Assembly (NCBI GenBank): GCA_965649825.1
Contig: OZ287705.1
Location: 62,001 to 126,000, forward strand
DNA length: 64,000 nucleotides
Direction: 5' to 3'
Source: Penicillus capitatus
Taxonomy: Eukaryota > Plantae > Chlorophyta
Numbering within the stretch: position 1 is the first letter of the stretch; each line of letters starts with the position of its first letter. The notes below the pieces were generated by a model. That model had not been told where the DNA came from. It was given only the letters and a program-made list of their open reading frames with translations, and made no database searches. The translations under genes were made by a program, and so were the position numbers. Positions 29,404 to 64,000 of the stretch are shown here, one piece after another.

Positions 29404-31098
29404 TCAAATCAGCTGCAAAGCACGCAAGTGTTCTTGAATCGCTTCATTTGGTTCCACTTTCGCTTCTTTCATGTAGTTATAAACTGTTTTCGCATTTTTC
29501 GCGTCGCCTTTCCTAGCACAGTATGCCATCACCGTCTCATACGGACCTTCGGTCGGCGTAATCTCCTCATTCCTTTGCATAGCGATTCGCACAGCCTTCA
29601 GCACCTGCACGGCAGAGTCCACACGGTCATGATCCAGTGCCAGCCGGATCATAGAATCCGTCATGCTGACCGACGGCCAATAATTCTTCGAAGTAAAACC
29701 ATTCCAGCACTGAAGCGCACATTTGACATCGGATGCCTTGAGGCACATGGCAAACCATATCCTGTAGCCACGGTCCGACAATAAGATACCCGACGATCTC
29801 ATCGGGCTTACCACCTCAGATACCTTCTTCATAGCCTCTTCCTGAGAATAGGTGCCATTCTCCCACAGACGCTGAACAATCTCTAACTGCGCAGCGAAGT
29901 TCTCTCCGTTACGGCCAATGTCATCTATGTCCTTCCCAGGCAGCTTTGACAATAAACTCAATGCCGTGGTCAAATTTCCTTTTTGCTCAAAGAGGTGTAT
30001 GATGCTTCTGAATGTAATGCTGTTCGGTTTCAGCTTGAGCTCCTTCATGCGATCAAGACAGTAGGCAATACAGGTCTCAAGCTCATTGTCTGTTAACTCC
30101 ACATCTGCCAGCGTTTGAATAAGAAAATCAAAGGAGGGACGAGTGTGTGTTCTATTGTCTCTGACCGATTTCTTCAAGTAACCCAGCGCCTCATTCGACC
30201 GTCCAAGTTTACCGAACAGTTTGATCAGAGGCAAGTAGGTAAACGCGTCAGGTTTCATCTTTTTCGATTTCATCGATGACACGATGAGCTTGCATTCTTC
30301 CAAGTACATCGCGCCAGTGGCACTGTCGACGTTTTCGGCATAGACCGCTAACATGGAATTGAAGCCTCGTAAATGTTCTCCAAACTTCGTGACGAGTTCA
30401 TCAAATGTCTCTTTCGCACGATTCACGTCTTTCCCTTTGCTGCAGACACTGATCAGCGAACGATACGTCACTGGATCTGGTGGGATCTTATAGTTTTTCT
30501 GCATCTGGTGAAAAATCTCGAATGCAGCGTCAACATCGCCAGTGTTTGCATAGGCGTGGATGATGGTATTGAAAAGCAACCTGTCTGGTTTCAACCTTGA
30601 CGCCAGGATATCGTCAAAAACCCGTTTCGCCATGTCCACGTTGTTCATCCGTATACAAGCTATCATAACATCCAGATAGATCGTCCTGTCGATCAAGACA
30701 CCGAGAGACTTCATTTCCCCGAAGAGATCCAGGATGTGAGAGTAGGAGCGGAAACGTGACAGTCGTCGTATTTCACGACCGTAGCTAGCTGTGAGTTTCG
30801 GTAGACGGTATTTCTTACGCATGAAATCATCGTCCACCTCTTGATGCTCCTCTAGGGCGTCATGAAACCCACGGCGTTGCGTCACGCCTGTCCAGCAGAG
30901 CGCCGTCTTGACATCGACGCTCTTTGGCATGGGGGATGGGCATCTGCGTGAAGCAGGGTAAAAAGAACCGATCGGTGAAACGGCAGATCTGGCCGGGGGA
31001 ACGCCGTCAGTGTCTGGAAGCGTCGGAACGACGGCGACGAAACGCGAATGAAAGAGCCAACGCCCGACGCTGGCGTAGTTTCGCGCAGAGCGGCGCAT
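29404..31098 (-). CDS. Pentatricopeptide repeat (PPR) protein, 564 aa, intronless
   Basis: Uninterrupted ORF with ~35-aa helical repeats (…PDRLLFNTIIHAYANTGDVDAAFEIFHQMQ…, …PDPVTYRSLISVCSKGKDVNRAKETFDEL…, …PNSITFRSIIHLF…). Arg/Ser-rich N-terminus resembles an organelle targeting peptide. Confidence 0.93.
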   Translation of the reverse strand: MRRSARNYASVGRWLFHSRFVAVVPTLPDTDGVPPARSAVSPIGSFYPASRRCPSPMPKSVDVKTALCWTGVTQRRGFHDALEEHQEVDDDFMRKKYRLPKLTASYGREIRRLSRFRSYSHILDLFGEMKSLGVLIDRTIYLDVMIACIRMNNVDMAKRVFDDILASRLKPDRLLFNTIIHAYANTGDVDAAFEIFHQMQKNYKIPPDPVTYRSLISVCSKGKDVNRAKETFDELVTKFGEHLRGFNSMLAVYAENVDSATGAMYLEECKLIVSSMKSKKMKPDAFTYLPLIKLFGKLGRSNEALGYLKKSVRDNRTHTRPSFDFLIQTLADVELTDNELETCIAYCLDRMKELKLKPNSITFRSIIHLFEQKGNLTTALSLLSKLPGKDIDDIGRNGENFAAQLEIVQRLWENGTYSQEEAMKKVSEVVSPMRSSGILLSDRGYRIWFAMCLKASDVKCALQCWNGFTSKNYWPSVSMTDSMIRLALDHDRVDSAVQVLKAVRIAMQRNEEITPTEGPYETVMAYCARKGDAKNAKTVYNYMKEAKVEPNEAIQEHLRALQLI

Positions 31099-31198
31099 CG
31101 TGGGCGTTTCCTACGTCCTCCGTCAGATGTGACGTACAAAGGCGAGCTGATGCTGATCATTTGTTCGATTTTCTTACTAACGTTTCTGGGTTTCTATT

Positions 31199-31649
31199 GA
31201 TGATAGGTGAAGGTGCCAAGCAACGGGTAAAAGTGCTAAAGATTCCTGACAAGAAACTGTCAAAGACGGTCGGGGCTCAGAAGGCAAAACTCGCACAGAT
31301 GGAGCTGAGAATCGAGGCGATGGAAGCCAGGCCGCGAGGAAGCAGAATACATCGCCCGCAAGCGCAACACCGAGCGCGCGAGTTCCTCTCTGAAGATGAA
31401 GATCGACGAAGCGGAGATCGCGTGCGAAGGGAGCAGACTGCAGAAGGAAGTGGACCGTTCGCGAAGGAAGGCCAAAAAGCTGAGATAGCGGCTGAACCAG
31501 CTGAACGTGGAGATGGAGGGGGCGAAGCGCACGAGCAACAACCGCGAAGGAGACCTAGAAGAGCAGAAGCAGCCCAACGGCTACCTCCAAGGAGTATTCT
31601 GTGTGAGCAGGATGTTCACATGGTGACTGGTGATGTGACAGATGTGTAA
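31199..31649 (+). pseudogene. Degenerate coiled-coil coding remnant, divergently oriented from the PPR gene
   Basis: Heptad-like frames (…LAQMELRIEAMEA; SLKMKIDEAEIACEGSRLQKEVDRSRRKAKKLR*RLNQLNVEME) broken by a frame change and an in-frame TAG. Confidence 0.35.
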
Positions 31650-34089
31650 CTTTAGGAAACAGCACAAGCCTACGCGAAGTCCCAGGCTCAGAACAAAGAG
31701 CTTATGAAAGGAATTGTGGCCCCACGTCGGTGGGCCGTCAACGACGCGGAGCTCGACGCCGCGGGAACGAGACGGATGAAACGCGCGAGCACCGTGTTGC
31801 TCACATTGCGTCATAGGCGACAGTTGACTGTCATGCGGTGCCATCGTCCGACGCGACGTTTGCATACGCCCGCAGAGACCAAGATTAAAGCAGTTCTGTC
31901 CATGCTGCAGGTTGCGGTCTTGATGGCTTCCTCTTCCCCAAGTGCCTATCGCGGCTCGTCAGCAACACCGACTTCTCCGGCTTCCGACGCTGCGAAGAGC
32001 GACCGACCGCCATCGGGCAGTCGCGCGTCGCGCGTCCCTTCACGCATTCTTTACTCCGTCTGTGACCCTCCGGCCGCACCCAATCGCGATTTGCACATCG
32101 GCGGATCGTCCTGTTCGAACGTCGACGACGCCACGGTGTAGCGCTGACGTCGTCCGACATTGTGCGGATTCACACTGGCGAATTCCATTTCATACGCCGT
32201 CATCTCTCTCGTCTCCACGCCACCGTCCGGTGACAGTGTCGTTCGCCTCAACCTAAGAAGAAAGTCATAGCGACAGGAAAGACACTCGAGATGATTCAGA
32301 GACCGTGGGCCCATGCCGATATCAGGTTCGTAGAGCTCGAAGCCGGACGGCTTCTGATCGGCAGTACGGCCGAACGGGTATGTCGGATAGTGGGTCGCGT
32401 CAACGATCACATGACCGTCCTCTTCGAAGGCGTTGATAAAGTGAAACGAGAAGGTCGTCTCCTCGAGCTGCCGACGAACGTCAGACAGGTCACACAACAA
32501 TGAGACGGTTGGGTAGCATGGTGTGCGTACCTGGTAGACCTTTGGTGCGGCGTCCCTCGGTACATCACCGTCGGGTGATGGACGAGGCAACAGATGAAGC
32601 TGAAACACTCGAGGTTTTCTCGTGTGTCGTCTTTTAATACAGACATCTCACTTCGTGAACGCCGCCATCTTCGAAGACGAATGCGTTTCCAGCGCCGACA
32701 CTCGGATCGAGAAGTTTCTTCATATCCATTCGCATTGGAAACTGGAGATCGAGTGTTGCGAGTGAGGCAATCGTATCGCCGGCTTTACCTTGTTGAAGAC
32801 GTAATAGTTTTCAGTGACGCCGATGGAGTGCAGGAGTGAGAGGTCGTCAAAGGAATACGTCTGTCGAGCACGAACCTTCAGATCTTCGTCAATTTCGCAG
32901 AGGCTGATATCCGTTTGCACAAATGACGAAGAGAGGGTCGGCTACAGAAAAGAACAGCTCAAAGGAAAGTTAAGCGAAATGGATTTTGACCACGTATTGT
33001 GTCATAGACAAGACAGTGACGTCACGTCGCGCATCGTATACAGCGTCGCCGACGCCGAAAACGGAATCAGCATCCAGATGACGGCAACCTAGAACGATTG
33101 GATACTTCATTAGCGCTAATGCCATGTACCAAACGAGAAGGAATCGCGAGAGCCTCATTGGAATTCTGTGGGGGAGAGAACAACTGCTTCATGCCGAGAT
33201 GCCATACAGTAGAAAAAACATCTTGCTTCGATCGCGGATCGATCGTCCTCAGTGTGTAAGGGTCGAGTACCGTCAAATAGGCACCCTGCAAAGAAAGGCG
33301 TTGCAGAACGACGGCCGCATCACGCAACAGATGACGATACTTCTTGTGGGATGAGTAGTTTGTTTCCTGCCGCAATGGGCATTCCGTTTCCCGGGTTCCT
33401 GGGAAGGAATGACGCGAAAAGCAATGTGCCGTTCTTTGGCACGGATCCGAACACGCCAGTAAACAACCGCCTGCCAGCCTCCTCTTCGATCATAGAACTG
33501 CGTTGCAAGACATGATGCGACTGAGAAGTGCCGCAGGGTCGGCCCTACTGAAGTGTCCGGACAAATCTGGACCGAAAGAAGGCCTTGCCGTCTCGAATGG
33601 CGATGCTTGCGATGATGCCATTCGCGTCGAAGAACGAACGAAACGTCTCGCCCAAGAACTCAATCTCTCCAGGGCCATTCCTATCGCCACGCGTTGGATA
33701 CGAATGGCATGAGAATCGCGTGTCCGCTACCGGAAGTAGGTGCCGCGCAGCTCTGCCGGAAGTTCGCCTTCGACGTTCTCGACCCAGTATCCCTCGGGGC
33801 ATTCTTCGACGGATATGTAAGCGGAGAAGTAGCGCCTAGAAAAGCACAGAACGGTGCGACGACGACGCGTCATTCGGCAGTACTCTATGCAGATGTTTGT
33901 TCGTGCACGCTCGTCCTCCGTTTGTTCCGCCAGAGAGGACGGCGACTGGGGACTCGGACGACTGGTGAAAGTGCATTCGGACGCTTTTGGGATGTCGGCA
34001 ATGCGCTTCGGTGCCCGATTCTTGCGAGAAAAACTGCGCGGAATGCAAAACGTGGTACCAGAGACACTAGCGAGACGAACGGATTTCAT
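31581..34089 (-). CDS. Carotenoid oxygenase / RPE65-family (CCD/ACO-like) protein with transit-peptide-like N-terminus; many introns; 3' end uncertain
   Basis: VEGELPAELRGTYFR|NGPG…FDANGII…DGKAFFRSRFVRT; LLHSIGVTENYYVF; FSFHFINAFEEDGHVIVD; MEFASVNP…GRRQRY are all RPE65/CCD-type motifs. ATG 34089 (MKSVRLASVS…). Confidence 0.82.
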
Positions 34090-35453
34090 GTTAACAGACA
34101 ACGCGAGGGAGAAAGGAATCGACTCTGATCTCAAAATAAGAACTAAAGCTTATGCGATTGGGAAATCGATGTTGAACTCCAGTCATGCTGGTGTCAGCAC
34201 ATGTGGTTCAGGCATTTCGTGCATCCATGATGCATGCCGTAGCTGATGTGACGCGTACCGCTCGAATCGATGCATCTAGTCAAACATCGCTTCAAACGAT
34301 CTTGGCACCGGCTGTGTATCGTCGTGCTGCAGTCTCTGGTCATGTTCCCTTAATTCGCGTTCATGATGACCCCGGAAACCAACGAAGTGGATGATTCGGT
34401 TCGGCGATGTTCATTCGAATATGGAATCGACGTGACTGCCGAGTCGCTCCACATAAGGTAACAAACAATCTCTGCCAACTGGCAACCTTTTCGTCCGATG
34501 GATGTGACTGGTCTCTCATAAACTTGACAGTTCGGCAGAAGAACAAAGAGATCCTCGTTGTCGAACTGCCATCAGACAAGATGTGCTGTCAGGTCATGGA
34601 TACTGGAACCAAGGGTAAAGGAGATGACGTGGACATCTCATGCAAAGATGCAGCGAAGAGCTGGGTGGTGCTCATGACAGTCGAATACGACGAGTTAACA
34701 CGATCCATTGTGTCACATGACGAATGCCATCACAGGAAGACGCTCTGGCATAACATGCGTCTGGCCCCACTCCTGCCAGACGACACTGGTATTCAGCATC
34801 CTGAGAGAGGTTCTAGCAATGCTTCGTCGTGTCCAAGAGATATCCGACAGAAGCCTTTCGATGGTTAGCAGCGTGTGTGGCTGTATGGAATCGCGGTCGT
34901 GGCGATGCGTGGTAACCGTCGTACAAATAAAACCTCCCGCCGACCATTGAGTCGTGTCTTTTCAGTTCGTCTGCTTCGTTCCTCTCCAACCGAGCTCCAG
35001 ACCACTGCGACTTGTGTGCGCACCACCTTCCTGTTGTTCGTGCGTTGGTCTGGCTTCGAAACACGCGTCCCTCAAACCGATCACGGAAGGAGGAGCAGAA
35101 CGCAGTCGGAGGTTTGTCGACGGAGGTCGTCTGTTGTTTTCCGCAGTGCTCCGACCCGCCCGGAGAGAACGACGACGGGCAGTGGAACCACGAGCGTGGA
35201 GGACGACGTGTACTGCGAAGTTTGCGTCCGAAGAAAAGCAAACTCCTAACCGACGCGTCAGAAACCGACGGGTCGTGCGTCGACTCTCCATGCAAGTAGG
35301 CTCTCCTGCGACCGCGCATCGTCTAAGCACGTTTGTTTCTTCAAGGAGGCTCTGAGGCCAATAGATTCCCGAGAGATTGCGATACCGCCCAACGAACAAG
35401 GCGAAAAGGGTATCACCGCGCACAACATCCTCAGGCGAAAAGGGCACCATTAC

Positions 35454-36406
35454 AGTTTCCCTGCCAGCGGCGCCCTCGGGAAATCCACGTGAGCCGAGTT
35501 AGCCATCACACCCAGGGGTCAACGCATGGTTGTGTGTTTCAGATGCAGCTGTCACCTGGCGGTGGCACCTGGCTGAGGCAGCTCTGCGGTGGGATAGGCG
35601 GAGTATGCGTGGACGTGGCGTCGTTCTGAAGCGCTGGGCCCGATCCAAGCCCCTCGCGTTCGGATCTGTCGCCGGTACCTTGAAGGATGCTGGCTTTGGA
35701 GGCCCCCACTCAGGACCCGCATTTCCCTTTTTTCTGTAAGGGTCTCTTGTTAGGGTCTTTTCTTTCGTCCTGAGTGGGTTTTTCATTTCGCCGTGTTAGA
35801 CATTAGTTTTTTATTACTTTGTTAGATCCTGCTCTTTCTGTTCTCCTTTCCGTGTTTAGAGTAAGTAGCCTCTTTCTTGACTGTACATTAATTTTTTTAC
35901 TTTTTCTATGTGTGCTCTGGCGACCTTTCTGTCGCGCTTAATTTTTTCGTGTTTATTGTTTCCCAATTTTATTTTTTCTCATTCCCTGTGCTTGCCTGTT
36001 TGTTACTGTGCTGTCTGGGCTTGAGACCGGCCACCTGCCTTCTTGACTGTGTGTTTCTCTGTTCGTGTTTGACTGCATGTGTGTTTTGCTCTTTTCTGTC
36101 CCTTCCTTGCGTGTTTTTTTATTAGCGTGCGCGCCGCCTTCGCCTCCTTAGCTGGCTCTGCAGGGGGAAAGCACAGTGAAGGTGTGGGGTAAGGCTTTGC
36201 ACGGGTCGGTGTCCCTGTCGTGGATGGTGACAGAAGCGGGCCCTGCAAGCTTTCGCTACCCCCCAGGTCAGATCCCTACCTCTGTCGTAAAGCATGACTC
36301 AATATGTGTGTGTCTGCCACTAGGCTGTGGGTCGGGTCGCCGTCCGCCTCCAATGGACAGCTGGCGATATACTTCACCCGAGGGCGCCGCACGGGCAGTG
36401 GAAACT
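35454..36406. mobile_element. Putative non-autonomous element (~953 bp) with imperfect 27-30-bp terminal inverted repeats and a T-rich core
   Basis: 35454-35480 AGTTTCC-CTGCC-AGCGGCGCCCTCGGG is the near reverse complement of 36377-36406 CCCGAGGGCGCCGCACGGGCAGTGGAAACT (14-bp exact core). 35730-36125 is strongly T-skewed. No TSD found. Confidence 0.45.
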
Positions 36407-38422
36407 AGGTGTTCGATGCACGGAGACACAGTATCGAATGTCGCCAGAGGACAACGCGTGTCAGCTGTGTCCTCCTAATGCAAACTGTGCATCCGATAAC
36501 GTCATTCAGCCGAACCGAGAGTACTGGCATCCGTATCCGTGCTCCTTACACATGCAGGAATGCCTGAGCCAATCGGCGTGCGATTTTGATCGAGAGGCGC
36601 AGCTGGTCGCCATCACAAAAGATGTGCACGACTGTGATCTCAACGCGGCCATTGAAAGTGCCTATGCCGAAGAACAATGCAACGAGGTCTCGTTTTCCTT
36701 CTCATAACCCCTTTTCTCCTATCTCTCGTGAAGCAGGGATACAGAGGACCGCTTTGTGGTGAATGCAGAAGTGGATACGGTCATACGTCTTCTTGGGACT
36801 GCGACCGATGTGACAAGGACCCGAGCATTGCCTACCTAGTTCTCTCTGTTGTCGTCGTCTTGGCACCCAGCAGCTTCGCCATCAGGAGTAGTCTGGGACC
36901 AGCTCTATCAAGTGGACAAGACATCGCGCGACTCCTTCGCCAAGTGCCAGCACGCAAGCTGATCAGGACCGTTTCTGTTCCGGAAGAACTCCAGTTGGCA
37001 GAACTCGGTGGTCCGTCAAGCAGAGTCGTCTCATCAAGGCGCCAGGCGACCGAGATCGCAGGCAGTCATGGAAGCGACGAAGATAGCCAACTGTCAGCCG
37101 AACTGGCCAAATGGAAACTCGTCGAGATCTTTAAGGTACATACAGCATCAGACGCGGCTCCGTAAAGAATCTCTGTTTCCAGATCACGATCAATTCTTTG
37201 CAGACGATTTCGGTGGTGATATACATCAGCTCCAACTGGACATCCTCGGCAAAGTCGCTGATCTCGGCAACAGGTAGGCCGCCATCGTCCCGCTTTCGGA
37301 TAAGGGACAGACTGTTCGATGGATAGATGTCGTTGGAGGCACGATGTTGAACACGGCGTCCTTTTCCATCGAATGTCTCATTCCGGTGGAGGCCGCCTTC
37401 CCCCGATCCATCCTTCCCCCGATCGTCGCCATAGCCGCTCCAGTTGCCGCTCTCCTCCTGCACGGCGTTTTCTGGTTCAGCGTGGCGATGAGATCCGCAG
37501 AGAGCTGGGAGTATTTGAAGAAGAGGTGGTCATTGAGCTTCCTTGCAGTTTCCTACCTGAGCTGTGTCTGGATCACCAAAAACGCCGTGAATGTGCTTTC
37601 CTGCGTCCGAGTGCGCCAATCCATCCACACAGGCGCAGAAAGCACGAGCTATCGCTGGACACAGACGACCACCGTCAAGTGTTTCGCAGGATCCCATGCC
37701 ATCCTTGTCAGTGTCCTTGGCCTTCCCGTCCTCCTTTTCTTCACGATCGGATTCCCAGTGCTGTTGTCGTGGAAGCTGCGAGAAAGAGAAACCTCGATCC
37801 TTCTCACGAGAGCTGGTTCGTGGATGCCACAGCGTTTCCGTATCGGGCTTACGCCGACAGGTTTGTCTACTGGGAATCCCTTGTCCTCTTCCGAAAAGCG
37901 CCGTTGACGATCGTCGTGGCAGTTGGATACCACCTAGGATCGAACCTCCAAGCCATCCTTGCCGTCTGCATCCTGACCACGGCACTGTACCTGCACACGA
38001 TATGTCATCCCTTCCGAAACGAATTTGCCAGTCTGAATGTGTATGAAGAGGCCGTTCTCTTTTTCTCGGACATTACCTTTGTCATGGCTCTCTTATTCAA
38101 TGACGATCGGATCGGAAATGCTCTGAGGGTAGTGCTATCAGTTTTATTTTTTCTGTCGATCTGTGGACTGTTGGCTTTCTTGGGCTTTGTCTTTTCTCAG
38201 GCAACCTTTGCCTATATGCGTGTCGTACTGGAAATAGAAGAGGTTCCACAGATCGATACGCTTGGCAATTTGCGAGTGATGCGCGAGTTCATGATCTTGA
38301 AAGTGGCGCAGAATGTCCCTCGTACGAGAAGCTTCATTCGTAAATCCAAAGCCGATGAGGAGCAAACAAACATTGGCCTGAACACCAGACGAGATTCGGC
38401 GGGTTTCTCCTCAGGATTGTGA
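36407..38422 (+). pseudogene. 5'-truncated Cys-rich ectodomain + multi-pass (7TM-like) membrane protein gene with frameshift at ~37785
   Basis: ACQLCPPNANC…YWH…C…GYRGPLCGECRSGY followed by many TM segments (…YWESLVLFRK…PF…LNVYE…). The frame changes at …AAGCTGCGAGAAAGAGAAACCTCG between ORFs 37344-37907 and 37319-38422. No start or signal peptide recognised. Confidence 0.7.
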
Positions 38423-45142: not shown

Positions 45143-45310
45143 ACTAACTATTTGGACGAACGACATCGACTCTGATGTGCCAGGCGACCGTTTTTTGCCG
45201 ACTCCATATCGACCCGCTTCCGAAGCTCGAGATGTCTTTGCTGAGCTCGTGGCACTGTTCCAAGAACGGATTGTCATTATCGATGGAGCGATGTGCAGTT
45301 GCGTCCGGAC

Positions 45311-53969: not shown

Positions 53970-56059
53970 TCAAAGAGATCTCTCATAACACGCGACAACC
54001 GTCTGTGACATGAATACAAGGCTCGAGGCCATCGTTTGCGACGGTCGCAATCCTGAGGAGAAACCCGCCGAATCTCGTCTGGCGTTCAGGCCAATGTTTG
54101 TTTGCTCCTCATCGGCTTTGGATTTACGAATGAAGCTTCTCGTACGAGGGACATTCTGCGCCACTTTCAAGATCATGAACTCGCGCATCACTCGCAAATT
54201 GCCAAGCGTATCGATCTGTGGAACCTCTTCTATTTCCAGTACGACGCGCATATAGGCAAAGGTTGCCTGAGAAAAGACAAAGCCCAAGAAAGCCAACAGT
54301 CCACAGATCGACAGAAAAAATAAAACCGACAGCGATACCCTCAGAGCATTTCCGATCCGATCGTCATTGAATAAGAGAGCCATGACAAAGGTAATGTTCG
54401 AGAAAAAGAGAACGGCCTCTTCATACACATTCAGACTGGCAAATTCGTTTCGGAAGGGATGACATATCGTGTGCAGGTACAGTGCCGTGGTCAGGATGCA
54501 GACGGCAAGGATGGCTTGGAGGTTCGATCCTAGGTGGTATCCAAATGCCACGACGATCGTCAACAGCGCTTTTCGGAAGAGGACAAGGGATTCCCAGTAG
54601 ACAAACCTGTCGGCGTAAGCCCGATACGGAAACGCTGTGGCATCCATGAACCAGGTCTCGTGCGAGGGATCGAGGTTTCTCTTTCTCGCAGCTTCCACGA
54701 CAACAGCACTGGGAATCCGATCGTGAAGAAAAGGAGGACGGGTAGGCCAAGGACACTGACAAGGATGGCATGGGATCCTGCGAAACACTTGACGGTGGTT
54801 GCCTGTATCCAGCGATAGCTCGTGCTTTCTGCGCCTGTGTGGATGAATTGGCGCACTCGGACGCAGGAAAGCACATTCACGGCGTTTTTGGTGATCCAGA
54901 CACAGCTCAGGTAGGAAACTGCAAGGAAGCTCAATGACCACCTCTTCTTCAAATACTCCCAGCTCTCTGCGGATCTCATCGCCACGCAGAACCAGAAAAC
55001 GCCGTGCAGGAGGAGAGCGGCAACTGGAGCGGCTATGGCGACGATCGGGGGAAGGATGGATCGGGGGAAGGCGGCCTCCACCGGAATGAGACATTCGATG
55101 GAAAAAGACGCCGTGTTCAACATCGTGCCTCCAATGACATCTATCCATCGAACAGTCTGTCCCTTATCCGAAAGCGGGACGATGGCGGCCTACCTGTTGC
55201 CGAGATCAGCGACTTTTCCGAGGATGTCCAGTTGGAGCTGATGTATATCGCCACCGAAATCGTCTGCAAAGAATTGATCGTGATCTGGAAACAGAGATTC
55301 TTTACGGAACCGCGTCTGATGCTGTATGTACCTTAAAGATCTCGACGAGTTTCCACTTGGCCAGTTCGGCTGAGAGTTGGCTATCTTCGTCGCTTCCATG
55401 ACTGCCTGCGATCTCGGTCGCCTGGCGCCTTGATGAGACGACTCTGCTTGACGGACCACCGAGTTCTGCCAACTGGAGTTCTTCCGAAACAGAAACGGTC
55501 CTGATCAGCTTGCGTGCTGGCACTTGGCGAAGGAGTCGCGCGATGTCTTGTCCACTTGATAGAGCTGGTCCCAGACTACTCTTGATGGCGAAGCTGCTGG
55601 GTGCCAAGACGACGACAACAGAGAGAACTAGGTAGGCAATGCTCGGGTCCTTGTCGCATCGGTCGCAGTCCCAAGAAGACGTATGACCGTATCCACTTCT
55701 GCATTCACCACAAAGCGGTCCTCTGTATCCCTGCTTCACGAGAGATAGGAGAAAAGGGGTTAGGAGAAGGAAAACGAGACCTCGTTGCATTGTTCTTCGG
55801 CATAGGCACTTTCAGTGGCCGCGTTGAGATCACAGTCGTGCACATCTTTTGTGATGGCGACCAGCTGCGCCTCTCGATCAAAATCGCACGCCGATTGGCT
55901 CAGGCATTCCTGCATGTGTAAGGAGCACGGATACGGATGCCAGTACTTCGGTTCGGCTGAATGACGTTATCGGATGCACAGTTTGCATTAGGAGGACACA
56001 GCTGACACGCGTTGTCCTCTGGCGACATTCGATACTGTGTCTCCGTGCATCGAACACCT
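53970..56059 (-). pseudogene. Cys-rich multi-TM gene, copy 2 (shared frameshift, extra frameshift, stop-codon loss)
   Basis: Same frameshift as copy 1. Additional 1-nt deletion at ~55948 (CCGAAGTACTGG vs CCGAGAGTACTGG). TGA>CGA extends the last ORF to 53970. Confidence 0.75.
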
Positions 56060-57033
56060 AGTTTCCACTGCCCGTGCGGCGCCCTCGGGTGAAGTATATC
56101 GCCAGCTGTCCATTGGAGGCGGACGGCGACCCGACCCACAGCCTAGTGGCAGACACACACATATTGAGTCATGCTTTACGACAGAGGTAGGGATCTGACC
56201 TGGGGGGTAGCGAAAGCTTGCAGGGCCCGCTTCTGTCACCATCCACGACAGGGACACCGACCCGTGCAAAGCCTTACCCCACACCTTCACTGTGCTTTCC
56301 CCCTGCAGAGCCAGCTAAGGAGGCGAAGGCGGCGCGCACGCTAATAAAAAAACACACAAGGAAGGGACAGAAAAAAGCAAAACACACAGTGTAGATGAAG
56401 AAACACACATGCAGTCAAACACGAACAGAGAAACACACAGTCAAGAAGGCAGGTGGCCGGTCTCAAGCCCAGACAGCACAGTAACAAACAGGCAAGCACA
56501 GGGAATGAGAAAAAATAAAATTGGGAAACAATAAACACGAACAAATTAAGCGCGACAGAAAGGTCGCCAGAGCACACATAGAAAAAGTAAAAAAATTAAT
56601 GTACAGTCAAGAAAGAGGCTACTTACTCTAAACACAGAAAGGAGAACAGAAAGAGCAGGATCTAACAAAGTAATAAAAAACTAATGTCTAACACGGCGAA
56701 ATGAAAAACCCACTCAGGACGAAAGAAAAGACCCTAACAAGAGACCCTTACAGAAAAAAGGGAAACGCGGGTCCTGAGTGGGGGCCTCCAAAGCCAGCAT
56801 CCTTCAAGGTACCGGCGACAGATCCGAACGCGAGGGGCTTGGATCGGGCCCAGCGCTTCAGAACGACGCCACGTCCACGCATACTCCGCCTATCCCACCG
56901 CAGAGCTGCCTCAGCCAGGTGCCACCGCCAGGTGACAGCTGCATCTAGAACACACAACCATGCGTTGACCCCTGGGTGTGATGGCTAACTCGGCTCACGT
57001 GGATTTCCCGAGGGCGCCGCTGGCAGGGAAACT
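56060..57033. mobile_element. Mirror copy of the putative TIR-bounded element
   Basis: Inverted repeats at 56060-56089 and 57007-57033; A-rich core 56340-56770; ~21 nt longer than the left copy. Confidence 0.45.
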
Positions 57034-58602
57034 GTAATGGTGCCCTTTTCACGTTGGGAGGCATCGCAGTCGCTCGGGAATCTATTGGCCTCAGAGTCTC
57101 CTTGAAGAAACAAATACGCTTAGACGATGCGCGGTCGCAGGAGAGCCTACTTGCATGGAGAGTCGACGCACGACCCGTCGGTTAGGAGTTTGCTTTTCTT
57201 CGGACGCAAACTGCGCTGCATGCGTCGTCCTCCGCGCTCGTGGTTCCACTGTCCGTCGTCGTTCTCTTCGGGCGGGTCGGATCACTGCGGAAAACAACAG
57301 ACGACCTCCGTCGACAAACCTCCGACTGCGTTCGAGTTCCGCCTTCTGCGATCGGTTTGAAGGGCGTGCACTGCGTCGCCGAACCAACGCACGAACAACA
57401 GGAAGGTGGTCCGCACACAAATCGCAGTGGTTTGCAGCTCAGTCGGAGAGGAACACAGGAGACGAACACAAAAGACACGAATCAATGGTCGCCAGACGAT
57501 TTATTCGTACGACGGTTACCACGCATCGCCACGACCGCGATTCCATACAGCCACACACGCTGCTAACCATCGAAAGGCTTCTGTCGGATATCTCTTGGAC
57601 ACGACGAAGCATTGCTAGAACCTCTCTCAGGATGCTGAATACCAGTGTCGTCTGGCAGGAGTGGGGCCAGACGCATGTTATGCCAGAGCGTCTTCCTGTG
57701 ATGGCATTCGTCATGTGACACAATGGATCGTGTTAACTCGTATTCGACTGTCATGAGCACCACCCAGCTCTTCGCTGCATCTTTGCATGAGATGTCCACG
57801 TCATCTCCTTTACCCTTGGTTCCAGTATCCATGACCTGACAGCACATCTTGTCTAATGGCAGTTCGACAACAGAGATCTCTTTGTTCTTCTGCCGAACTG
57901 ACAAGTTAATCAGAGACCACTCACATCCATCGGCCGAAAAGGTTGCCAGTTGGCAGAGATTGTTTGCTGCCTCATGTGAGGCGACTCACCAGTCACTTCA
58001 ATTCCATCTTCGAATAAACATCGCCGATCCAAATCATCCACTTCGTTGGTTTCCGGGGTCATCATGAACGCGAATTAAGGGAACATGACCAGAGACTGCA
58101 GCACGACGATACACAGCCGGTGCCAAGATCGTTTGAAGCGATGTTTGACTAGATGCATCGATTCGAGCGGTACGCGTCACATCAGCTACGGCATGCATCA
58201 TGGATGCACGAAATGCCTGAACCACATGTGCTGACACTTGCATGACTGGAGTTCAACATCGATTTCCCAATCGCATAAGCTTTAGTTCTTATTTTGAGAT
58301 CAGAGTCGATTCCTTTCTCCCTCGCGTTGTCTGTTAACATGAAATCCGTTCGTCTCGCTAGTGTCTCTGGTACCACGTTTTGCATTCCGCGCAGTTTTTC
58401 TCGCAAGAATCGGGCACCGAAGCGCATTGCCGACATCCCAAAAGCGTCCGAATGCACTTTCACCAGTCGTCCGAGTCCCCAGTCGCCGTCCTCTCTGGCG
58501 GAACAAACGGAGGACGAGCGTGCACGAACAAACATCTGCATAGAGTACTGCCGAATGACGCGTCGTCGTCGCACCGTTCTGTGCTTTTCTAGGCGCTACT
58601 TC

Positions 58603-58848
58603 TGTCGCCGGTCGGGTCGGACGAAAATACCAACAGCGGAAGACTTTTTTTGTTTACAGAGCAAGGGCAAACATGGTGCGAATTGTCCGTTTCAATACGC
58701 CAGTGGCGACGTGACATGCCTATGCAGGTGAGTCATCCTTGCGCCAGAACCAGAGGATGGCGCCTCAGGTGACTCAACCTGCACCCCCTCAGAACATGGA
58801 CCCATTGAAATCGAGGCAGTCACATCGCCAAGCCAGATCTTGGCGACA
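58603..58848 (-). repeat. 3' LTR (246 bp)
   Basis: Direct repeat of 60061-60306; differs at 58693 (C vs A at 60151). Confidence 0.96.
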
Positions 58849-58862
58849 CCACGCTTCCCGCC
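58849..58862 (-). promoter_or_regulatory. Polypurine tract-like sequence
   Basis: Minus strand GGCGGGAAGCGTGG directly precedes the 3' LTR. Confidence 0.6.
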
Positions 58863-58910
58863 AAACTCCGAAAAACAGCAAAAAAGACCCCGCAAAACAA
58901 CACAATTAAA

Positions 58911-59906
58911 TCAGTCGATTCCCGAGGTGAACGTTCGTCTGAAAACTGAGAAAATGCTCCATCCTGATTCTGCATTTGCTTCCTGCGACCCCTCCGCTCT
59001 CTGATGCGTATCCGATGTCGTCGGATCCGCTGACGCAACCGTATTAATCCGCACTCGCGGACAATCCTTGGCCAGATGTCCCTTGGATCGACAGCTGTAG
59101 CATATCCGACCGCGCTTCATGGCACCTCCGCCATCATCCGCCGCGTCGGCAGCTTTCGCTCTTCGTCGTCTCGGGTAGCGCCCCATGTCGTGCAGCACTC
59201 TCTTCATCTGCTGCAATGTCTTCAAGCTTCGTCGCCCCTCAACCGGTCTCGTTAACATCACCTCAGCTGTCGTCTTGACATCGTTCTGCAACGTCTTCAC
59301 CTCATGGGTCAACGACTGTAGACAAGGCACCAAGTCAGGTGCCGAAATGAACTTCTTTTTCGCCTCTGCAAAGGCGGTCTCTGTCTTTCTAAGCTTCTCA
59401 TGAACAGAGGAGGCTTCTACGCGTGCCTCGTTTTCGCCTCGTCGGGCCTCCCGAATGTCCCGTTGTAAACTCGCATTGAACTCTGCCAGTCGCTCGCTCT
59501 CCCGGGTCGCGTCAGCACATGCCCTTCGCGCCTCGGCGGCCCTTTGTCGTTCGCGTTGCAGCTGCCGCTGCAGCTCTTCCTTCTCTGCATCGTTCTCGAG
59601 CCTCATTCGTTCTAAGCTCTCTCCAAGTGCTAGTGTCTCGCGGCTCAATTCAAGCACGTCTTGCTCTTGGCGAAGCTTCTGACAGACGTTGCTGAGGAAC
59701 TCTTTCATGTCCCCATCCGCAACCAAGTAATGCAGACCGGCGTCACCCCTTGTCCGGGCTGCCACCGCGAACCCGACTAGACTGGGAAATAATTCCTCAT
59801 CTTCACCCGCGGTTGCGACGATGCTCGTGTCGCGTAGCCACACTACGTAAGAACCCTCCTCAAAGTCCTGACCTTGCTCCACCTCTCCTCGTCGTCCTTG
59901 ACTCAT
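58911..59906 (-). CDS. Gag-like ORF (331 aa): long coiled coil + CCHC zinc knuckle
   Basis: MSQGRRGEV…; heptad-rich segment (…LERMRLENDAEKEELQRQLQRERQRAAEARR…); CYSCRSKGHLAKDC = CX2CX4HX4C. No RT, RNase H, integrase or protease motifs. Confidence 0.85.
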   Translation of the reverse strand: MSQGRRGEVEQGQDFEEGSYVVWLRDTSIVATAGEDEELFPSLVGFAVAARTRGDAGLHYLVADGDMKEFLSNVCQKLRQEQDVLELSRETLALGESLERMRLENDAEKEELQRQLQRERQRAAEARRACADATRESERLAEFNASLQRDIREARRGENEARVEASSVHEKLRKTETAFAEAKKKFISAPDLVPCLQSLTHEVKTLQNDVKTTAEVMLTRPVEGRRSLKTLQQMKRVLHDMGRYPRRRRAKAADAADDGGGAMKRGRICYSCRSKGHLAKDCPRVRINTVASADPTTSDTHQRAEGSQEANAESGWSIFSVFRRTFTSGID

Positions 59907-60047
59907 CCTGAAACCGTCGTTCCTTGAAGACTCCTGGTGCCTAGACCTCTTCTCGGCAGGACTCACACTCCACAAAGGAGGGCGCAGTGCACAGAGCAGG
60001 TGCGCGACGTCACTTAGACGGAGCTTCAACCTGAGGAACGTGTCAAC

Positions 60048-60059
60048 GCTCCGAAACCA
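60048..60059 (-). promoter_or_regulatory. Primer-binding site, tRNA-iMet-like
   Basis: Minus strand TGGTTTCGGAGC, 1 nt from the 5' LTR; 10/12 match to the plant iMet PBS TGGTATCAGAGC. Confidence 0.75.
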
Positions 60060-60060
60060 C

Positions 60061-60306
60061 TGTCGCCGGTCGGGTCGGACGAAAATACCAACAGCGGAAG
60101 ACTTTTTTTGTTTACAGAGCAAGGGCAAACATGGTGCGAATTGTCCGTTTAAATACGCCAGTGGCGACGTGACATGCCTATGCAGGTGAGTCATCCTTGC
60201 GCCAGAACCAGAGGATGGCGCCTCAGGTGACTCAACCTGCACCCCCTCAGAACATGGACCCATTGAAATCGAGGCAGTCACATCGCCAAGCCAGATCTTG
60301 GCGACA
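60061..60306 (-). repeat. 5' LTR (246 bp) with TATA-like TATTTAAA (60148-60155)
   Basis: Direct repeat of 58603-58848; adjacent PBS defines it as the 5' LTR. Confidence 0.96.
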
Positions 60307-62489
60307 ACTTCTCCGCTTACATATCCGTCGAAGAATGCCCCGAGGGATACCGGGTCGAGAACGTCGAAGGCGAAATTCCGGCAGAGCTGCACGGCACCTA
60401 CTTCCGGTAGCGGACACGCGATTCTCATGCCATTCGTATCCAACGCGTGGCGATAGGAATGGCCCTGGAGAGATTGAGTTCTTGGGCGAGACGTTTCGTT
60501 CGTTCTTCGACGCGAATGGCATCATCGCAAGCATCGCCATTCGAGACGGCAAGGCCTTCTTTCGGTCCAGATTTGTCCGGACACTTCAGTAGGGCCGACC
60601 CTGCGGCACTTCTCAGTCGCATCATGTCTTGCAACGCAGTTCTATGATCGAAGAGGAGGCTGGCAGGCGGTTGTTTACTGGCGTGTTCGGATCCGTGCCA
60701 AAGAACGGCACATTGCCTTTCGCGTCATTCCTTCCCAGGAACCCGGGAAACGGAATGCCCATTGCGGCAGGAAACAAACTACTCATCCCACAAGAAGTAT
60801 CGTCATCTGTTGCGTGATGCGGCCGTCGTTCTGCAACGCCTTTCTTTGCAGGGTGCCTATTTGACGGTACTCGACCCTTACACACTGAGGACGATCGATC
60901 CGCGATCGAAGCAAGATGTTTTTTCTACTGTATGGCATCTCGGCATGAAGCAGTTGTTCTCTCCCCCACAGAATTCCAATGAGGCTCTCGCGATTCCTTC
61001 TCGTTTGGTACATGGCATTAGCGCTAATGAAGTATCCAATCGTTCTAGGTTGCCGTCATCTGGATGCTGATTCCGTTTTCGGCGTCGGCGACGCTGTATA
61101 CGATGCGCGACGTGACGTCACTGTCTTGTCTATGACACAATACGTGGTCAAAATCCATTTCGCTTAACTTTCCTTTGAGCTGTTCTTTTCTGTAGCCGAC
61201 CCTCTCTTCGTCATTTATACGAACGGATATCAGCCTCTGCGAAATTGACGAAGATCTGAAGGTTCGTGCTCGACAGACGTATTCCTTTGACGACCTCTCA
61301 CTCCTGCACTCCATCGGCGTCACTGAAAACTATTACGTCTTCAACAAGGTAAAGCCGGCGATACGATTGCCTCACTCGCAACACTCGATCTCCAGTTTCC
61401 AATGCGAATGGATATGAAGAAACTTCTCGATCCGAGTGTCGGCGCTGGAAACGCATTCGTCTTCGAAGATGGCGGCGTCCACGAAGTGAGATGTCTGTAT
61501 TAAAAGACGACACACGAGAAAACCTCGAGTGTTTCAGCTTCATCTGTTGCCTCGTCCATCACCCGACGGTGATGTACCGAGGGACGCCGCACCAAAGGTC
61601 TACCAGGTACGCACACCATGCTACCCAACCGTCTCATTGTTGTGTGACCTGTCTGACGTTCGTTGGCAGCTCGAGGAGACGACCTTCTCGTTTCACTTTA
61701 TCAACGCCTTCGAAGAGGACGGTCATGTGATCGTTGACGCGACCCACTATCCGACATACCCGTTCGGCCGTACTGCCGATCAGAAGCCGTCCGGCTTCGA
61801 GCTCTACGAACCTGATATCGGCATGGGCCCACGGTCTCTGAATCATCTCGAGTGTCTTTCCTGTCGCTATGACTTTCTTCTTAGGTTGAGGCGAACGACA
61901 CTGTCACCGGACGGTGGCGTGGAGACGAGAGAGATGACGGCGTATGAAATGGAATTCGCCAGTGTGAATCCGCACAATGTCGGATGACGTCAGCGCTACA
62001 CCGTGGCGTCGTCGACGTTCGAACAGGACGATCCGCCGATGTGCAAATCGCGATTGGGTGCGGCCGGAGGGTCACAGACGGAGTAAAGAATGCGTGAAGG
62101 GACGCGCGACGCGCGACTGCCCGATGGCGGTCGGTCGCTCTTCGCAGCGTCGGAAGCCGGAGAGAAGTCGGTGTTTCTGACGAGCCGCGATAGGCACTTG
62201 GGGAAGAGGAAGCCATCAAGACCGCAACCTGCAGCATGGACAGAACTGCTTTAATCTTGGTCTCTGCGGGCGTATGCAAACGTCGCGTCGGACGATGGCA
62301 CCGCATGACAGTCAACTGTCGCCTATGACGCAATGTGAGCAACACGGTGCTCGCGCGTTTCATCCGTCTCGTTCCCGCGGCGTCGAGCTGCGCATCGTTG
62401 ACGGCCCACCGACGTGGGGCCACAATTCCTTTCATAAGCTCTTTATTCTGAGCCTACTTCTTCGCGTAGGCTTGTGCTGTTTCCTAAAG

Positions 62490-62927
62490 TTACACATCTG
62501 TCACATCACCAGTCACCATGTGAACATCCTGCTCACACAGAATACTCCTTGGAGGTAGCCGTTGGGCTGCTTCTGCTCTTCTAGGTCTCCTTCGCGGTTG
62601 TTGCTCGTGCGCTTCACCCCCTCCATCTCCACGTTTAGCCGCTATCTCAGCTTTTTGGCCTTCCTTCGCGAACGGTCCACTTTCTTTTGCAGTCTGCTCC
62701 CTTCGCACGCGATCTCCGCTTCGTCGATCTTCATCTTCAGAGAGGAACTCGCGCGCTAGGTGTTGCGCTTGCGGGGGATGGATTCTGCTTCCTCGCGACC
62801 TGGCTTCCATCGCCTCGATTCTCAGCTCCATCTGTGCGAGTTCTGCCGTCTGGCCATCGACCGTCTCCGACAGTTGCTCGTTCCGAGCGTTTAACACTTT
62901 CATCTGTTGCTCAGCACCTGCGCTCAT
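62490..62927 (-). pseudogene. Coiled-coil remnant, mirror copy
   Basis: MSAGAEQQMKVLNARNEQLSETVDGQTAELAQMELRIEAMEA…; same in-frame TAG as the left copy. Confidence 0.35.
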
Positions 62928-63031
62928 TTTCGTTCGAACCGCAGAAACGTCAGTAAGAAAACTGAAGGAGTAGTCAGCATCAGCTCGCCTTTGTACGTCA
63001 CATCTGACGGAGGACGTAGGAAACGCCCACG

Positions 63032-64000
63032 ATGCGCCGCTCTGCGCGAAACTACGCCAGCGTCGGGCGTTGGCTCTTTCATTCGCGTTTCGTCGCCGTC
63101 GTTCCGACGCTCCCAGACACTGACGGCGTTCCCCCGGCCAGATCTGCCGTTTCACCGATCGGTTCTTTTTACCCTGCTTCCCGCAGATGCCCATCCCCCA
63201 TGCCAAAGAGCGTCGATGTCAAGACGGCGCTCTGCTGGACAGGCGCGACGCAACTCCGTTGGTTTCATGTCGTCTCAGAAAAGCAGCATCCAGAGATGGA
63301 CAATATCATGCCGGAGAAATACCGTCTGCTGAAACGAACATCGGATTACGTTCGTGAAATGCGACAGCTGATACGCGACCGCTCTTACTCTCGCATCCTG
63401 GATCTCTTCGAAGACATGAAGTCACGTAGTATCCCGTTCGACGTTGCGGTCTGTATGCTGGTCATAAAAGCCTATTTGCGGATGAACAATGTGGACATGG
63501 TGAAACGGGTGCTTGACGATATCATGGCGTCAAGGTTGAAGTTAGACAAGAGGGAGCTGTTTAATTCCATCATCCGCGATTGTGAAAACACTGGCGATGT
63601 TGACGCTGCTTTCAAGTTATATCGCCAAATGCAGAAGGACGATCGGATTTTACCCGATTCAGCTACATACCGTTCGCTGATCAACGTCTGCAGGAGGGGG
63701 AAAGACGTGAATCGTGCGAGAAAGGTATTTAATGAAATGGTCAAGAAAGTTGGAGCCAAAGTTGGTGGCTTCAATGCCATGATGGAGGTCTATGTCGAGA
63801 ATGTCGACAGTGACACTGGCGAGGCGTACCTGCGGGAATGCAAGTACCTTTTGTCATTGATAAAATCGAAGAAAATCCAACTCCATGCAGACACCTATCT
63901 GTATCTGGTCAAACTGTCTGGCAAATTGGGACGGTTGGACGAAGCGCTGGGTTACCTTAAGAAATCTGTCAGCAGTGATCTGGGGCCAAGTCTTGCCACG
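63032..64000 (+). CDS. PPR protein paralogue (partial, runs off the window)
   Basis: Open frame from ATG 63032 to the window end (323 codons). The first ~71 codons are near-identical to the 31098 gene; the rest is a diverged PPR array (…RELFNSIIRDCENTGDVDAAFKLYRQMQ…PDSATYRSLINVC…). Confidence 0.9.
   Translation, partial: MRRSARNYASVGRWLFHSRFVAVVPTLPDTDGVPPARSAVSPIGSFYPASRRCPSPMPKSVDVKTALCWTGATQLRWFHVVSEKQHPEMDNIMPEKYRLLKRTSDYVREMRQLIRDRSYSRILDLFEDMKSRSIPFDVAVCMLVIKAYLRMNNVDMVKRVLDDIMASRLKLDKRELFNSIIRDCENTGDVDAAFKLYRQMQKDDRILPDSATYRSLINVCRRGKDVNRARKVFNEMVKKVGAKVGGFNAMMEVYVENVDSDTGEAYLRECKYLLSLIKSKKIQLHADTYLYLVKLSGKLGRLDEALGYLKKSVSSDLGPSLAT

Follow-up and report, generated by a model that had tools for sequence, protein, structure and literature searches.

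[quoted passage not shown] The former was proposed in a preliminary description of the window analyzed here (the whole 64,000-nt stretch of DNA, from the green alga Penicillus capitatus). The locus lies in the nuclear genome, amid clustered repeats of PPR, kinase, and cyclophilin modules. On the strength of sequence comparisons, we consider it probable that the structure is a genuine inverted segmental duplication in this PPR/kinase gene cluster and that its mosaic derives from nonallelic gene conversion.

Extent and gene content of the duplication

The left arm (L) was compared with the reverse complement of positions 50992 to 69580 by blastn and MAFFT; to trace the right arm (R), we extended the contig 8,435 bp past the end of the window. 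The inverted duplication measures ~48.5 kb in total, about twice the length first described. The arms, their genes, and the spacer between them are as follows (positions beyond 64000 are window equivalents).

21030-41453, + strand: L arm, 20.4 kb
21204-22628, + strand: kinase-like ORF at the outer end of L (Pfam Pkinase, 1e-09)
29404-31098, - strand: PPR gene, L copy, 564 aa, intact ORF with P-type repeats (Pfam PPR_2, 4e-34)
32054-32647, - strand: carotenoid-cleavage dioxygenase (RPE65 family) exon, L copy (Pfam RPE65, 1.5e-12)
36656-38422, + strand: cysteine-rich membrane-protein ORFs, L copy, from the ORF list
39814-41306, + strand: SnRK2-like Ser/Thr kinase gene, L copy, ~5 exons (Pfam Pkinase on the last exon)
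41454-50991: spacer, 9,538 bp
44976-45161: 31-bp tandem repeat in the spacer
45125-45532, - strand: cyclophilin exon in the spacer (Pfam Pro_isomerase, 3e-07)
48528-49133 and 49426-50022, + strand: cathepsin X-like exon blocks in the spacer (Pfam Peptidase_C1, 7e-22 and 9e-09)
50992-64000 in the window and on to ~69580, - strand: R arm, 18.6 kb
~51139-52632, - strand: SnRK2-like kinase gene, R copy
53970-55790, - strand: cysteine-rich membrane-protein ORFs, R copy
58603-60306, - strand: LTR retroelement, in R only, 1,704 bp, nonautonomous
61490-62083, + strand: carotenoid-cleavage dioxygenase exon, R copy, interrupted at 61985 by a nonsense change private to it
63032-64000 in the window, ORF ending at 64720, + strand: PPR gene, R copy, 562 aa

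The inverted repeat is real, as had been reported, and L-R homology stops at a sharp inner edge (L 41453, R 50992); the outer boundary of L is equally sharp. The reported arm length of ~10.6 kb, with an outer limit at 30140, has to be revised, because that apparent edge arose where the R copy, which continues for 5.6 kb beyond the window, runs off its end. Homology extends past the PPR gene at 89 to 94% identity in the outer arm, and the PPR body is thus an internal low-identity island rather than the outer edge. L-R identity is 94.3% across 26102-41453 (~94% overall) and 98.1% in the inner ~10 kb (31401-41453). The low-identity blocks are rich in indels and structural differences (4.5 kb versus 1.66 kb, 453 bp, 142 bp, and 41 bp), and L 21582-26101 has no counterpart in R. 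Except for the PPR body (74.8%), the arms are paralogous segments of at least 1 kb at about 90% identity or more, and their outer flanks are unique and nonhomologous to each other.

The spacer has no homology to the arms, but it is not entirely unique, as had been stated, since 45414-46872 has a 90.7% copy immediately upstream of the window. The best named match of its cathepsin X-like protease is from a green alga. The GC content of the window, ~0.53, matches the 52.4% of Ostreobium quekettii, whose genome is diploid, with a heterozygosity of 1.29%. Together with the protease match and the kinase matches given below, this points to a diploid host that is probably a siphonous bryopsidalean allied to Ostreobium. 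Scans of the whole window with Rfam (gathering threshold) and for tRNAs gave no match, and among the selected stop-free ORFs searched against Pfam, most of those in the arms and flanks had none.

For annotation, the arms thus carry duplicated PPR, carotenoid-cleavage dioxygenase, membrane-protein, and SnRK2-like kinase genes, one R copy having a private stop: at 61985, L and an independent contig described below (H) retain Arg. The hand-spliced SnRK2-like kinase is 57% identical to a Bryopsis protein and 53% identical to an Ostreobium protein, its best named matches. The sole Pfam match of the cysteine-rich ORFs is a weak one, to DUF7630. The kinase-like ORF at the outer end is in two pieces in L, fused in R, and in a third arrangement in H.

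The retroelement of R, missing from the preliminary description, is flanked by a 5-bp target-site duplication (ACTTC, at 58598-58602 and 60307-60311); its LTRs of ~246 bp (58603-58848 and 60061-60306) differ at 1 of 247 aligned bases. The empty site is intact in L at 33824, and H lacks the element. Within it are TG..CA ends, a PBS-like TGG, a purine-rich, PPT-like tract, and a gag-like ORF of 450 aa with a zf-CCHC domain; protease, reverse transcriptase, and integrase are absent, and lacking pol, the element is nonautonomous. It shares its LTRs, TG..CA ends, 5-bp duplication, PBS/PPT-like motifs, and CCHC ORF with nonautonomous (gag-only, LARD/TRIM-like) LTR retrotransposons.

Relationships among the copies along the arms

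Four further segments of L mark changes in its relationships. P0002 is a PPR paralogue on another contig.

30876-31098, - strand: homogenized, presequence-like 5' end of the PPR gene, 98.7% identical between L and R over 223 bp and ~95% identical to P0002
31156-31348: putative ectopic conversion tract, in which 193 bp of L exactly match the region upstream of P0002
34286-35484: internal low-identity block with indels of 15 and 41 bp, in which L stands alone and H agrees with R
35485-38700: segment in which, in a three-way comparison, H carries L-type variants and differs from R

The abrupt shifts in L-R identity noted previously were borne out. Identity is 99.2% at 31401-34285, 94.5% at 34286-34685, 100% at 34686-34885, 90.4% at 34886-35484, and 98.5% from 35485 to the inner boundary at 41453; mismatches are overdispersed (variance/mean of 4.9 per 100 bp). 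Along the arm, the course of identity is nonmonotonic (91 to 94%, 75%, 98.7%, 85%, 99%, 90 to 94%, and 98.5%). At the inner ends, for which ~90% had been estimated, we measured 98 to 99.5%, with a drop to ~94% confined to the last ~55 bp.

The PPR gene diverges most. In its body (29404-30875), the L and R copies share 74.8% of their nucleotides, close to the ~70% first estimated, and 63% of their amino acids; for the codons from 76 onward, dS is 0.49 and dN is 0.27, and the overall dN/dS of 0.54 is not above 1. Fast protein evolution alone was rejected as the cause of this island, given that dS is ~5 times the divergence of the flanks. Upstream of the gene, 41 L-private mismatches in ~130 bp (31157-31287, ~68% identity) likewise match an estimate of ~70%, but that patch cannot be read as an unhomogenized relic: the 193-bp tract (L-R identity of ~68 to 83% within it) is an exact import from a third locus, with L and the P0002 locus only 77.6% identical outside it. 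The R copy of the PPR gene is, in turn, 91 to 97% identical to P0002 in windows where L and R are 72 to 89% identical. In windows of the PPR body protein, L and R are mutually closest in only a few (alignment columns ~141 to 200 and 381 to 420); elsewhere another family member is closer. The family is P-type and clustered: this 512-kb contig has at least 7 members, including P0011, which lies 1.6 kb to the left of the window, and the whole assembly has at least 20, at 47 to 68% identity.

An independent contig (ctg317179, 15x), H, covers the entire R arm between R's own unique flanks, from which it differs at 5 of 2,914 bp in the outer flank and 5 of 869 bp in the R-side spacer. We assume that H represents the second haplotype of the R arm or else comes from a sister strain. 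H joins the R arm to the same spacer side as the main contig does; flipping of the spacer, which had been raised earlier, is possible in principle, but no flipped spacer was seen. A search for an L-arm allele contig, by way of a 62-aa ORF common to both arms, found that ORF only in L, R, and H.

H combines L-type, R-type, and private tracts in a patchwork. Tracts in which H=R, H=L, and L=R alternate along the arms, and the closest-copy relations switch in tracts of ~0.1 to 3 kb, in the three-way comparison of L, R, and H as well as in a four-way comparison that includes the copy Z, described below. Across L 35539-38682, for instance, H agrees with L against R at ~41 sites and with R against L at ~7. 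A Sawyer-type permutation test (10,000 permutations) on the informative sites of L, R, and H gave P values of ≤0.0004 for the maximum run and the summed squared run lengths in each of the three pairs; the GENECONV-type check thus found significantly clustered shared variants. R and H diverge by 1.49% over the inner arm, 5.8% over the outer arm, and 0.26% in the unique flanks; their differences show a 5.7-fold enrichment in the repeat over those flanks (P = 2e-11), while the R and H copies of the PPR body are identical (0 differences in 1,681 bp). Were H a mixed-read consensus, part of the three-way signal would be artifactual.

Z, a third copy of the kinase gene in direct orientation, lies ~45 kb upstream, outside the window. 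Against the arms, it has an identity of ~87% over 38641-39272; at 39300-41525, it is 99.5% identical to L and so closer to L than is R (98.3%), and it shares the L-side inner junction for 72 bp. Private variants of H are partly common to Z, which speaks against a mixed-read consensus; at 11 sites across 39274-40917, the base found in both H and Z occurs in neither L nor R.

Explanations for the mosaic

The tract switching among L, R, and H and the excess of differences in the repeat point to arm-to-arm gene conversion. Our results support the view that the duplication was not made in one recent step and that gene conversion best explains the mosaic. A double-strand break in one copy would have been repaired from a paralogous copy without crossover. 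Events between the arms probably hold 31.4 to 34.3 kb and 35.5 to 41.45 kb at 98 to 100% identity, and exchange with other paralogous loci, namely, the third kinase copy upstream and other members of the PPR family of at least 20 genes, has probably homogenized some segments and elsewhere imported foreign tracts that lower arm-to-arm identity. The PPR coding body would be the segment least reached by arm-to-arm conversion, its two copies being different, mosaic family members, probably kept apart by selection or a divergence barrier. Divergence is 0.07 to 0.10 in the noncoding outer arm, and dS is 0.49 in the PPR gene, versus 0.002 to 0.006 between haplotypes, and from a baseline of ~10% we infer that the duplication is old; this baseline could instead reflect imports from unsampled paralogues. 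The original proposal of an ancient duplication homogenized by conversion therefore holds as to the genuine duplication and the exchange between its arms but not as to a two-arm system, since outside loci also take part.

One alternative reverses the history: the duplication is young (1 to 2% divergence), and its low-identity stretches were overwritten later from distant paralogues, the arms becoming less alike. One such patch was demonstrably imported from the P0002 locus, the R copy of the PPR gene is nearly identical to P0002 in some windows, and the genome holds many related modules. We nevertheless regard this history as unlikely, given that about half of the arm, in several blocks, would need donors all ~6 to 10% diverged, whereas the only other copies of the outer flank seen are 68 to 71% identical and no donor for 34.3 to 35.5 kb was found among the loci fetched; the many indels and structural differences of the low-identity blocks are also what age would leave. 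Nested or stepwise duplications that differ in age, an old one of the PPR region and then a recent inverted one of the inner 10 kb, with no conversion, would account for an inner 10 kb far more similar on average than the outer 10 kb. They would not account for the nonmonotonic course of identity, and the tract-by-tract switching of the relations among L, R, H, and Z and the concentration of allelic differences in duplicated sequence already contradict them; we give this scheme hardly any weight.

Just as improbable is an assembly artifact, whether a head-to-head join of two haplotypes or strains or a contig grown from a chimeric, fold-back read. Origin in a metagenome assembly of modest depth (23x and 15x according to the contig names) would allow it, but 9.5 kb of unique, gene-bearing sequence separates the arms, their outer flanks are nonhomologous, and they are set apart by a 25% difference between their PPR genes, a retroelement with its target-site duplication, and kilobase-scale indels. 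Moreover, the allele of the R arm is a contig of its own, tied to R-specific sequence at either end, and Z shares the L-side junction. The specific possibility that L and R are misjoined haplotypes was rejected on the basis of their distinct flanks, the R-only LTR insertion, and the spanning of the R arm by H.

Nonallelic gene conversion at this locus is of interest as a cleanly documented interlocus case from the nuclear DNA of a green alga, genome dynamics in this group having been little studied; its support comes from assembly data, through the comparison of three to four copies that include one allele. The locus also illustrates how a reading limited to a window can mislead, by creating a false outer edge and by making a fresh import from another locus look like an ancient patch.

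Comparison with known systems

The restorer-like (RFL) PPR clusters of flowering plants consist of clustered P-type genes, with fast-evolving, mosaic paralogues and a conserved N-terminal presequence. The algal family shares with them the clustering of P-type genes, the fast-evolving, mosaic paralogues, and retention of a predicted presequence; unlike them, it has an overall L-R dN/dS below 1, as given above, and no close relative detectable outside this assembly (none above ~25% identity in 5.8 billion proteins). A literature search on PPR expansions in Bryopsidales gave nothing relevant, and PPR genes go unmentioned in the genome papers on Ostreobium and Bryopsis. It is conceivable, though we are doubtful, that the structure is one node of a lineage-specific, clustered, rapidly diversifying PPR family that evolves by interlocus segmental exchange with its presequence kept uniform, as an algal counterpart of plant restorer-like clusters in which the inverted arms serve as a reservoir. 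If so, a nuclear-organelle arms race would exist outside land plants, and the arms would leave one PPR copy free to diverge while keeping the adjoining genes alike. The PPR family may merit separate study.

Large palindromes of the mammalian X and Y chromosomes (human P1 to P8 and those of the primate and mouse X) have arm identities of >99% (definitions from bioRxiv 10.1101/800185 and PMC8327919). In common with them, the algal structure has inverted arms of >10 kb (above the ~8 to 10 kb that defines large palindromes), a unique, gene-bearing spacer, paralogous gene copies in the arms, exchange that would occur without crossover, and structural polymorphism between haplotypes. Its arms, however, are 94% identical overall and 98% identical in the inner half, with 99 to 100% reached only in subblocks; identity so far below that of classical palindromes implies homogenization that is weak or recent, and it is patchy. 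Unlike in the mammalian palindromes, outside copies participate, no spacer inversion was seen, and nothing points to a sex chromosome or nonrecombining region. The likeness to a closed, two-arm palindrome of the sex-chromosome type thus does not hold, as both Z and the P0002 locus also exchange with the arms.

The fit is closer with interlocus gene conversion in segmental duplications and clustered multigene families, with which the locus shares mosaic paralogue identity, incongruent trees along the sequence, raised "allelic" diversity in duplicated DNA, and short exact tracts between diverged loci. Shared variants are clustered, and exact or nearly exact tracts are found with diverged paralogues (the 193-bp tract, and Z at 99.5% beside ~87%). 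The structure belongs to this category; its host and gene content are new and nothing essential differs, so that, with nothing new in its mechanism, it illustrates a known process clearly but in no unusual way.

Extent of the arms and the L-R identity profile

A repeat search together with blastn confirmed the inverted repeat, and in a gapped MAFFT alignment its inner boundary is sharp, at L 41453 / R 50992 (L and R, left and right arms), leaving a 9,538-bp spacer between the arms. The window comes from a linear contig of 512,039 bp (ctg340382_23x_l, ENA metagenome assembly ERZ25074695; window position x is contig position x+150,065), and look-up of window-encoded ORFs extended the window by 8,435 bp past its end (L002) and also retrieved sequence preceding its start (L007). 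The window and the public ENA record differ by 11 substitutions and 1 indel (1530-3956) and at 3 sites (49216, 49283, and 49286) and are identical at all other compared positions; this could reflect a different polishing version. On the extended contig, homology goes on past 30140, which the preliminary description had taken as the outer limit of ~10.6-kb arms but which is the point where the R copy leaves the window.

Arm homology on the extended contig
L 28983-33840 versus R 65143-60296
L 26913-28781 versus R 67008-65164: 91.5% by blastn, 93.6% ungapped
L 26102-26456 versus R 67364-67012: 90.4%
L 21034-21581 versus R 69575-69027: 89.5%

The outer boundary is also sharp (~L 21030 / R 69580, the R end lying outside the window). 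The arms measure 20.4 kb (L) and 18.6 kb (R), and the entire structure ~48.5 kb.

L-R identity by segment (L coordinates)
29404-30875: 74.8%, PPR coding body
30876-31098: 98.7%, first 223 bp of the PPR gene
31099-31400: 85.1%, including a ~130-bp core at ~68%
31401-34285: 99.2%
34286-34685: 94.5%
34686-34885: 100%
34886-35484: 90.4%, with 15- and 41-bp indels
35485-41453: 98.5%

Identity thus shifts abruptly between 74.8 and 100%, and mismatches are over-dispersed (variance/mean of 4.9 per 100 bp). The mosaic is real, statistically solid, and was under-measured at first. The earlier identity figures were roughly right, except that the inner ends, put at ~90%, are 98 to 99.5% identical, falling to ~94% in the last ~55 bp only. 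The PPR body is an internal low-identity island with more similar sequence on both sides.

In their outer third, L and R differ by structural rearrangement. A 4.5-kb stretch of L with two kinase-like pieces (21582-26101) is missing from R, and R carries a 1.66-kb insertion, with a 15-bp direct repeat at its flanks, and a 453-bp deletion. The insertion (L002 3410-5071; window-equivalent 67365-69026, outside the window) interrupts the R-arm kinase-like gene, has the direct repeat ATCCCCCGCTGCTAT and a 473-aa ORF without known domain, and could represent a retroposed gene or else a mobile element not described before. A 1.7-kb gap in the L-R alignment corresponds to an LTR retroelement private to R (58603-60306), whose LTRs (~246 bp, TG..CA termini) differ at a single base. 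Its borders show a 5-bp target-site duplication (ACTTC), and L retains the empty site intact at 33824. Internally, the element has a TGG primer-binding-like site after the 5' LTR, a purine-rich tract ahead of the 3' LTR, and a 450-aa gag-like ORF that includes a CCHC zinc knuckle; it lacks pol. A nonsense change private to R turns Arg into a stop in its copy of a carotenoid-cleavage dioxygenase exon (61985; L 32152).

A second version of the R arm

Several features speak against an assembly artefact, whether haplotypes joined in error or a fold-back chimera. The outer flanks of L and R are unrelated, the spacer bears genes (for a cyclophilin and a cathepsin X-like protease, the latter with a green alga as best named match), and the differences between the arms include a retroelement with its target-site duplication, kilobase-scale indels, and 25% divergence in one gene. 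Moreover, a second independent contig of the same assembly (H; ctg317179_15x_l, 21,671 bp; loci L003, L006, and L010) covers the whole R arm and reaches into R-specific sequence at both ends, with 5 mismatches over 2,914 bp of the unique outer flank and 5 over 869 bp of the spacer on its R side. H lacks both R insertions, including the 1.66-kb one, retains the 453 bp missing from R, and has the dioxygenase exon intact, as does L. H is best read as the R arm of a second haplotype or of a sister strain. The hand-spliced translation of the arm's kinase has its best named relatives in Bryopsis sp. KO-2023 (57%) and Ostreobium quekettii (53%), followed by other chlorophytes. A host among the Bryopsidales is a provisional assignment, drawn mainly from this one gene. 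The presence of a haplotig fits with the diploidy and 1.29% heterozygosity of O. quekettii, whose GC content is 52.4% (bioRxiv 10.1101/2020.07.21.211367); that of the window is ~0.53.

The spacer has further repeats of its own. A 31-bp tandem repeat of ~5 copies (GTCGCCGATCGTCGATCGATCATCACCCACC; 44976-45161) adjoins a cyclophilin exon, and two neighboring paralogous cathepsin X-like exon blocks (48528-50022; 48737-48809 versus 49794-49866, 79%) suggest a tandem pair, with an 85% paralogue on a 1.23-Mb contig. An arm-to-arm crossover would invert the spacer, as had been proposed, but evidence that this occurred is lacking: no flipped spacer was found, the junction being the same in both R-arm versions (main contig and H).

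Tract exchange among the arms and with other loci

We aligned L, R, and H and sorted every variable site by the odd-one-out sequence. H equals R at 1,681/1,681 positions of the PPR body and at 34397-34556 and 34925-35436; at 35539-38682 it matches L at ~41 sites and R at ~7; and at 27278-27570, 34621-34924, and 39141-39425 H stands apart from L and R, which agree with each other. When the order of informative sites was permuted 10,000 times, the longest run and the sum of squared run lengths both gave P<=0.0004 for all three pairs, in the inner arm, the outer arm, and both combined, so that a GENECONV-type check bears out the mosaic. Divergence between R and H amounts to 144/9,691 positions (1.49%) in the inner arm, 5.8% in the outer arm, 0% in the PPR body, and 0.26% in the unique flanks, a 5.7-fold excess in the repeat (Fisher p=2e-11). 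Interlocus conversion raises "allelic" diversity in duplicated DNA only, in tracts matching a paralogue; the R-H excess has this expected footprint and thus points to gene conversion.

Two further loci exchange with the arms. Z, 6 to 9 kb left of the window start, is a third copy of the arm's inner 2.9 kb (a SnRK2-like kinase gene), lies in direct orientation relative to L, and runs 72 bp beyond the inner boundary on the L side. At 38641-39272 its identity to each of L, R, and H is ~87%; at 39300-41525 its identity to L reaches 99.5%, above the 98.3% between R and L. Eleven sites at 39274-40917 have a base common to H and Z and absent from L and R, which indicates that H's private variants are real paralogue variants. 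Adjoining Z are a 90.7% copy of the cyclophilin-containing spacer segment 45414-46872 and a PPR gene, P0011. The cyclophilin segment (L007 8425-9894) is oriented to the kinase gene opposite to the L arm-spacer layout, which is compatible with, but not proof of, a past inversion.

The other partner is P0002, a PPR gene on a 296-kb contig (L004). The patch at 31.16-31.29 kb had been described as ~70% identical; its low identity stands, but it is no relic, since L 31156-31348 is a 193-bp exact match to the region upstream of P0002, the loci being 77.6% identical overall, and the patch is thus an import from a third locus. Next to P0002, a 2.9-kb inverted match (3308-6183 versus L004 4927-7805, 83.8%) indicates that repeated modules reach beyond the palindrome. 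Nearby are a full-length Ty3/gypsy-type polyprotein ORF (1,479 aa; L004 97-4536) and an AP2-domain ORF (L004 5688-5948). Left of the palindrome lies an older direct-orientation segmental duplication (995-2258 versus 18491-19742, 69.5%; 18-162 versus 17961-18105, 91.7%).

The PPR family comprises at least 20 paralogues (47 to 68% amino acid identity), at least 7 of them on the 512-kb contig. Members were found in this assembly only; the next best match among 5.8 billion proteins searched was 22% identical. Both arms have intact ORFs (564 and 562 aa) with identical first 72 residues. From codon 76 onward, dS is 0.49 and dN 0.27 (ratio, 0.54); synonymous divergence is ~5 times that of the non-coding flanks (0.07 to 0.10), and the island thus has deeper or foreign ancestry rather than fast protein evolution alone. 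In sliding windows over the PPR body, L and R are mutual closest relatives in few protein windows only (alignment columns ~141-200 and 381-420); elsewhere another member is closer than the other arm. The nearest family member is P0002 for the middle of R (82 to 93%) and for L residues 61-100 (95%), and P0011 for the L C terminus. Residues 1-75, a presequence-like N terminus, are near-identical in L, R, and P0002 and well conserved family-wide (A1 alignment), in contrast to the repeat body with its 47 to 68%; this putative targeting part seems to evolve in concert.

Origin of the mosaic and comparison with known systems

The data are most economically explained by an old inverted duplication, combined with repeated inner homogenization and PPR tract exchange. 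The neutral baseline would be ~7 to 10% divergence, 20 to 50 times haplotype divergence; the inner half would have been homogenized repeatedly by crossover-free repair from the other arm or Z, and the PPR region would swap tracts with other family members. The diverged PPR bodies have probably dropped below the identity required for efficient arm-to-arm conversion, and selection for distinct PPR specificities may add to their separation. A young duplication in which all diverged blocks were imported is improbable: it requires several donors of similar divergence, and the loci fetched yielded no donor for either the outer arm or the 34.3-35.5 kb block. The ancient duplication with gene conversion put forward in the preliminary description was right in kind, but its two-arm-only system was not, as Z and P0002 also exchange.

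We regard the structure as a new instance of a known phenomenon, with the lineage-specific PPR family as the part most worth further study. The PPR cluster is reminiscent, by analogy only, of plant restorer-like PPR clusters. Long arms in inverted orientation, a unique spacer, and conversion between the arms are features that the structure shares with mammalian sex-chromosome palindromes. However, those palindromes are defined by >99% arm identity (bioRxiv 10.1101/800185; PMC8327919), whereas the arms here fall below this value and are open to outside copies. The proper place of the structure is with the ordinary segmental duplications and the clustered gene families that undergo non-allelic gene conversion.
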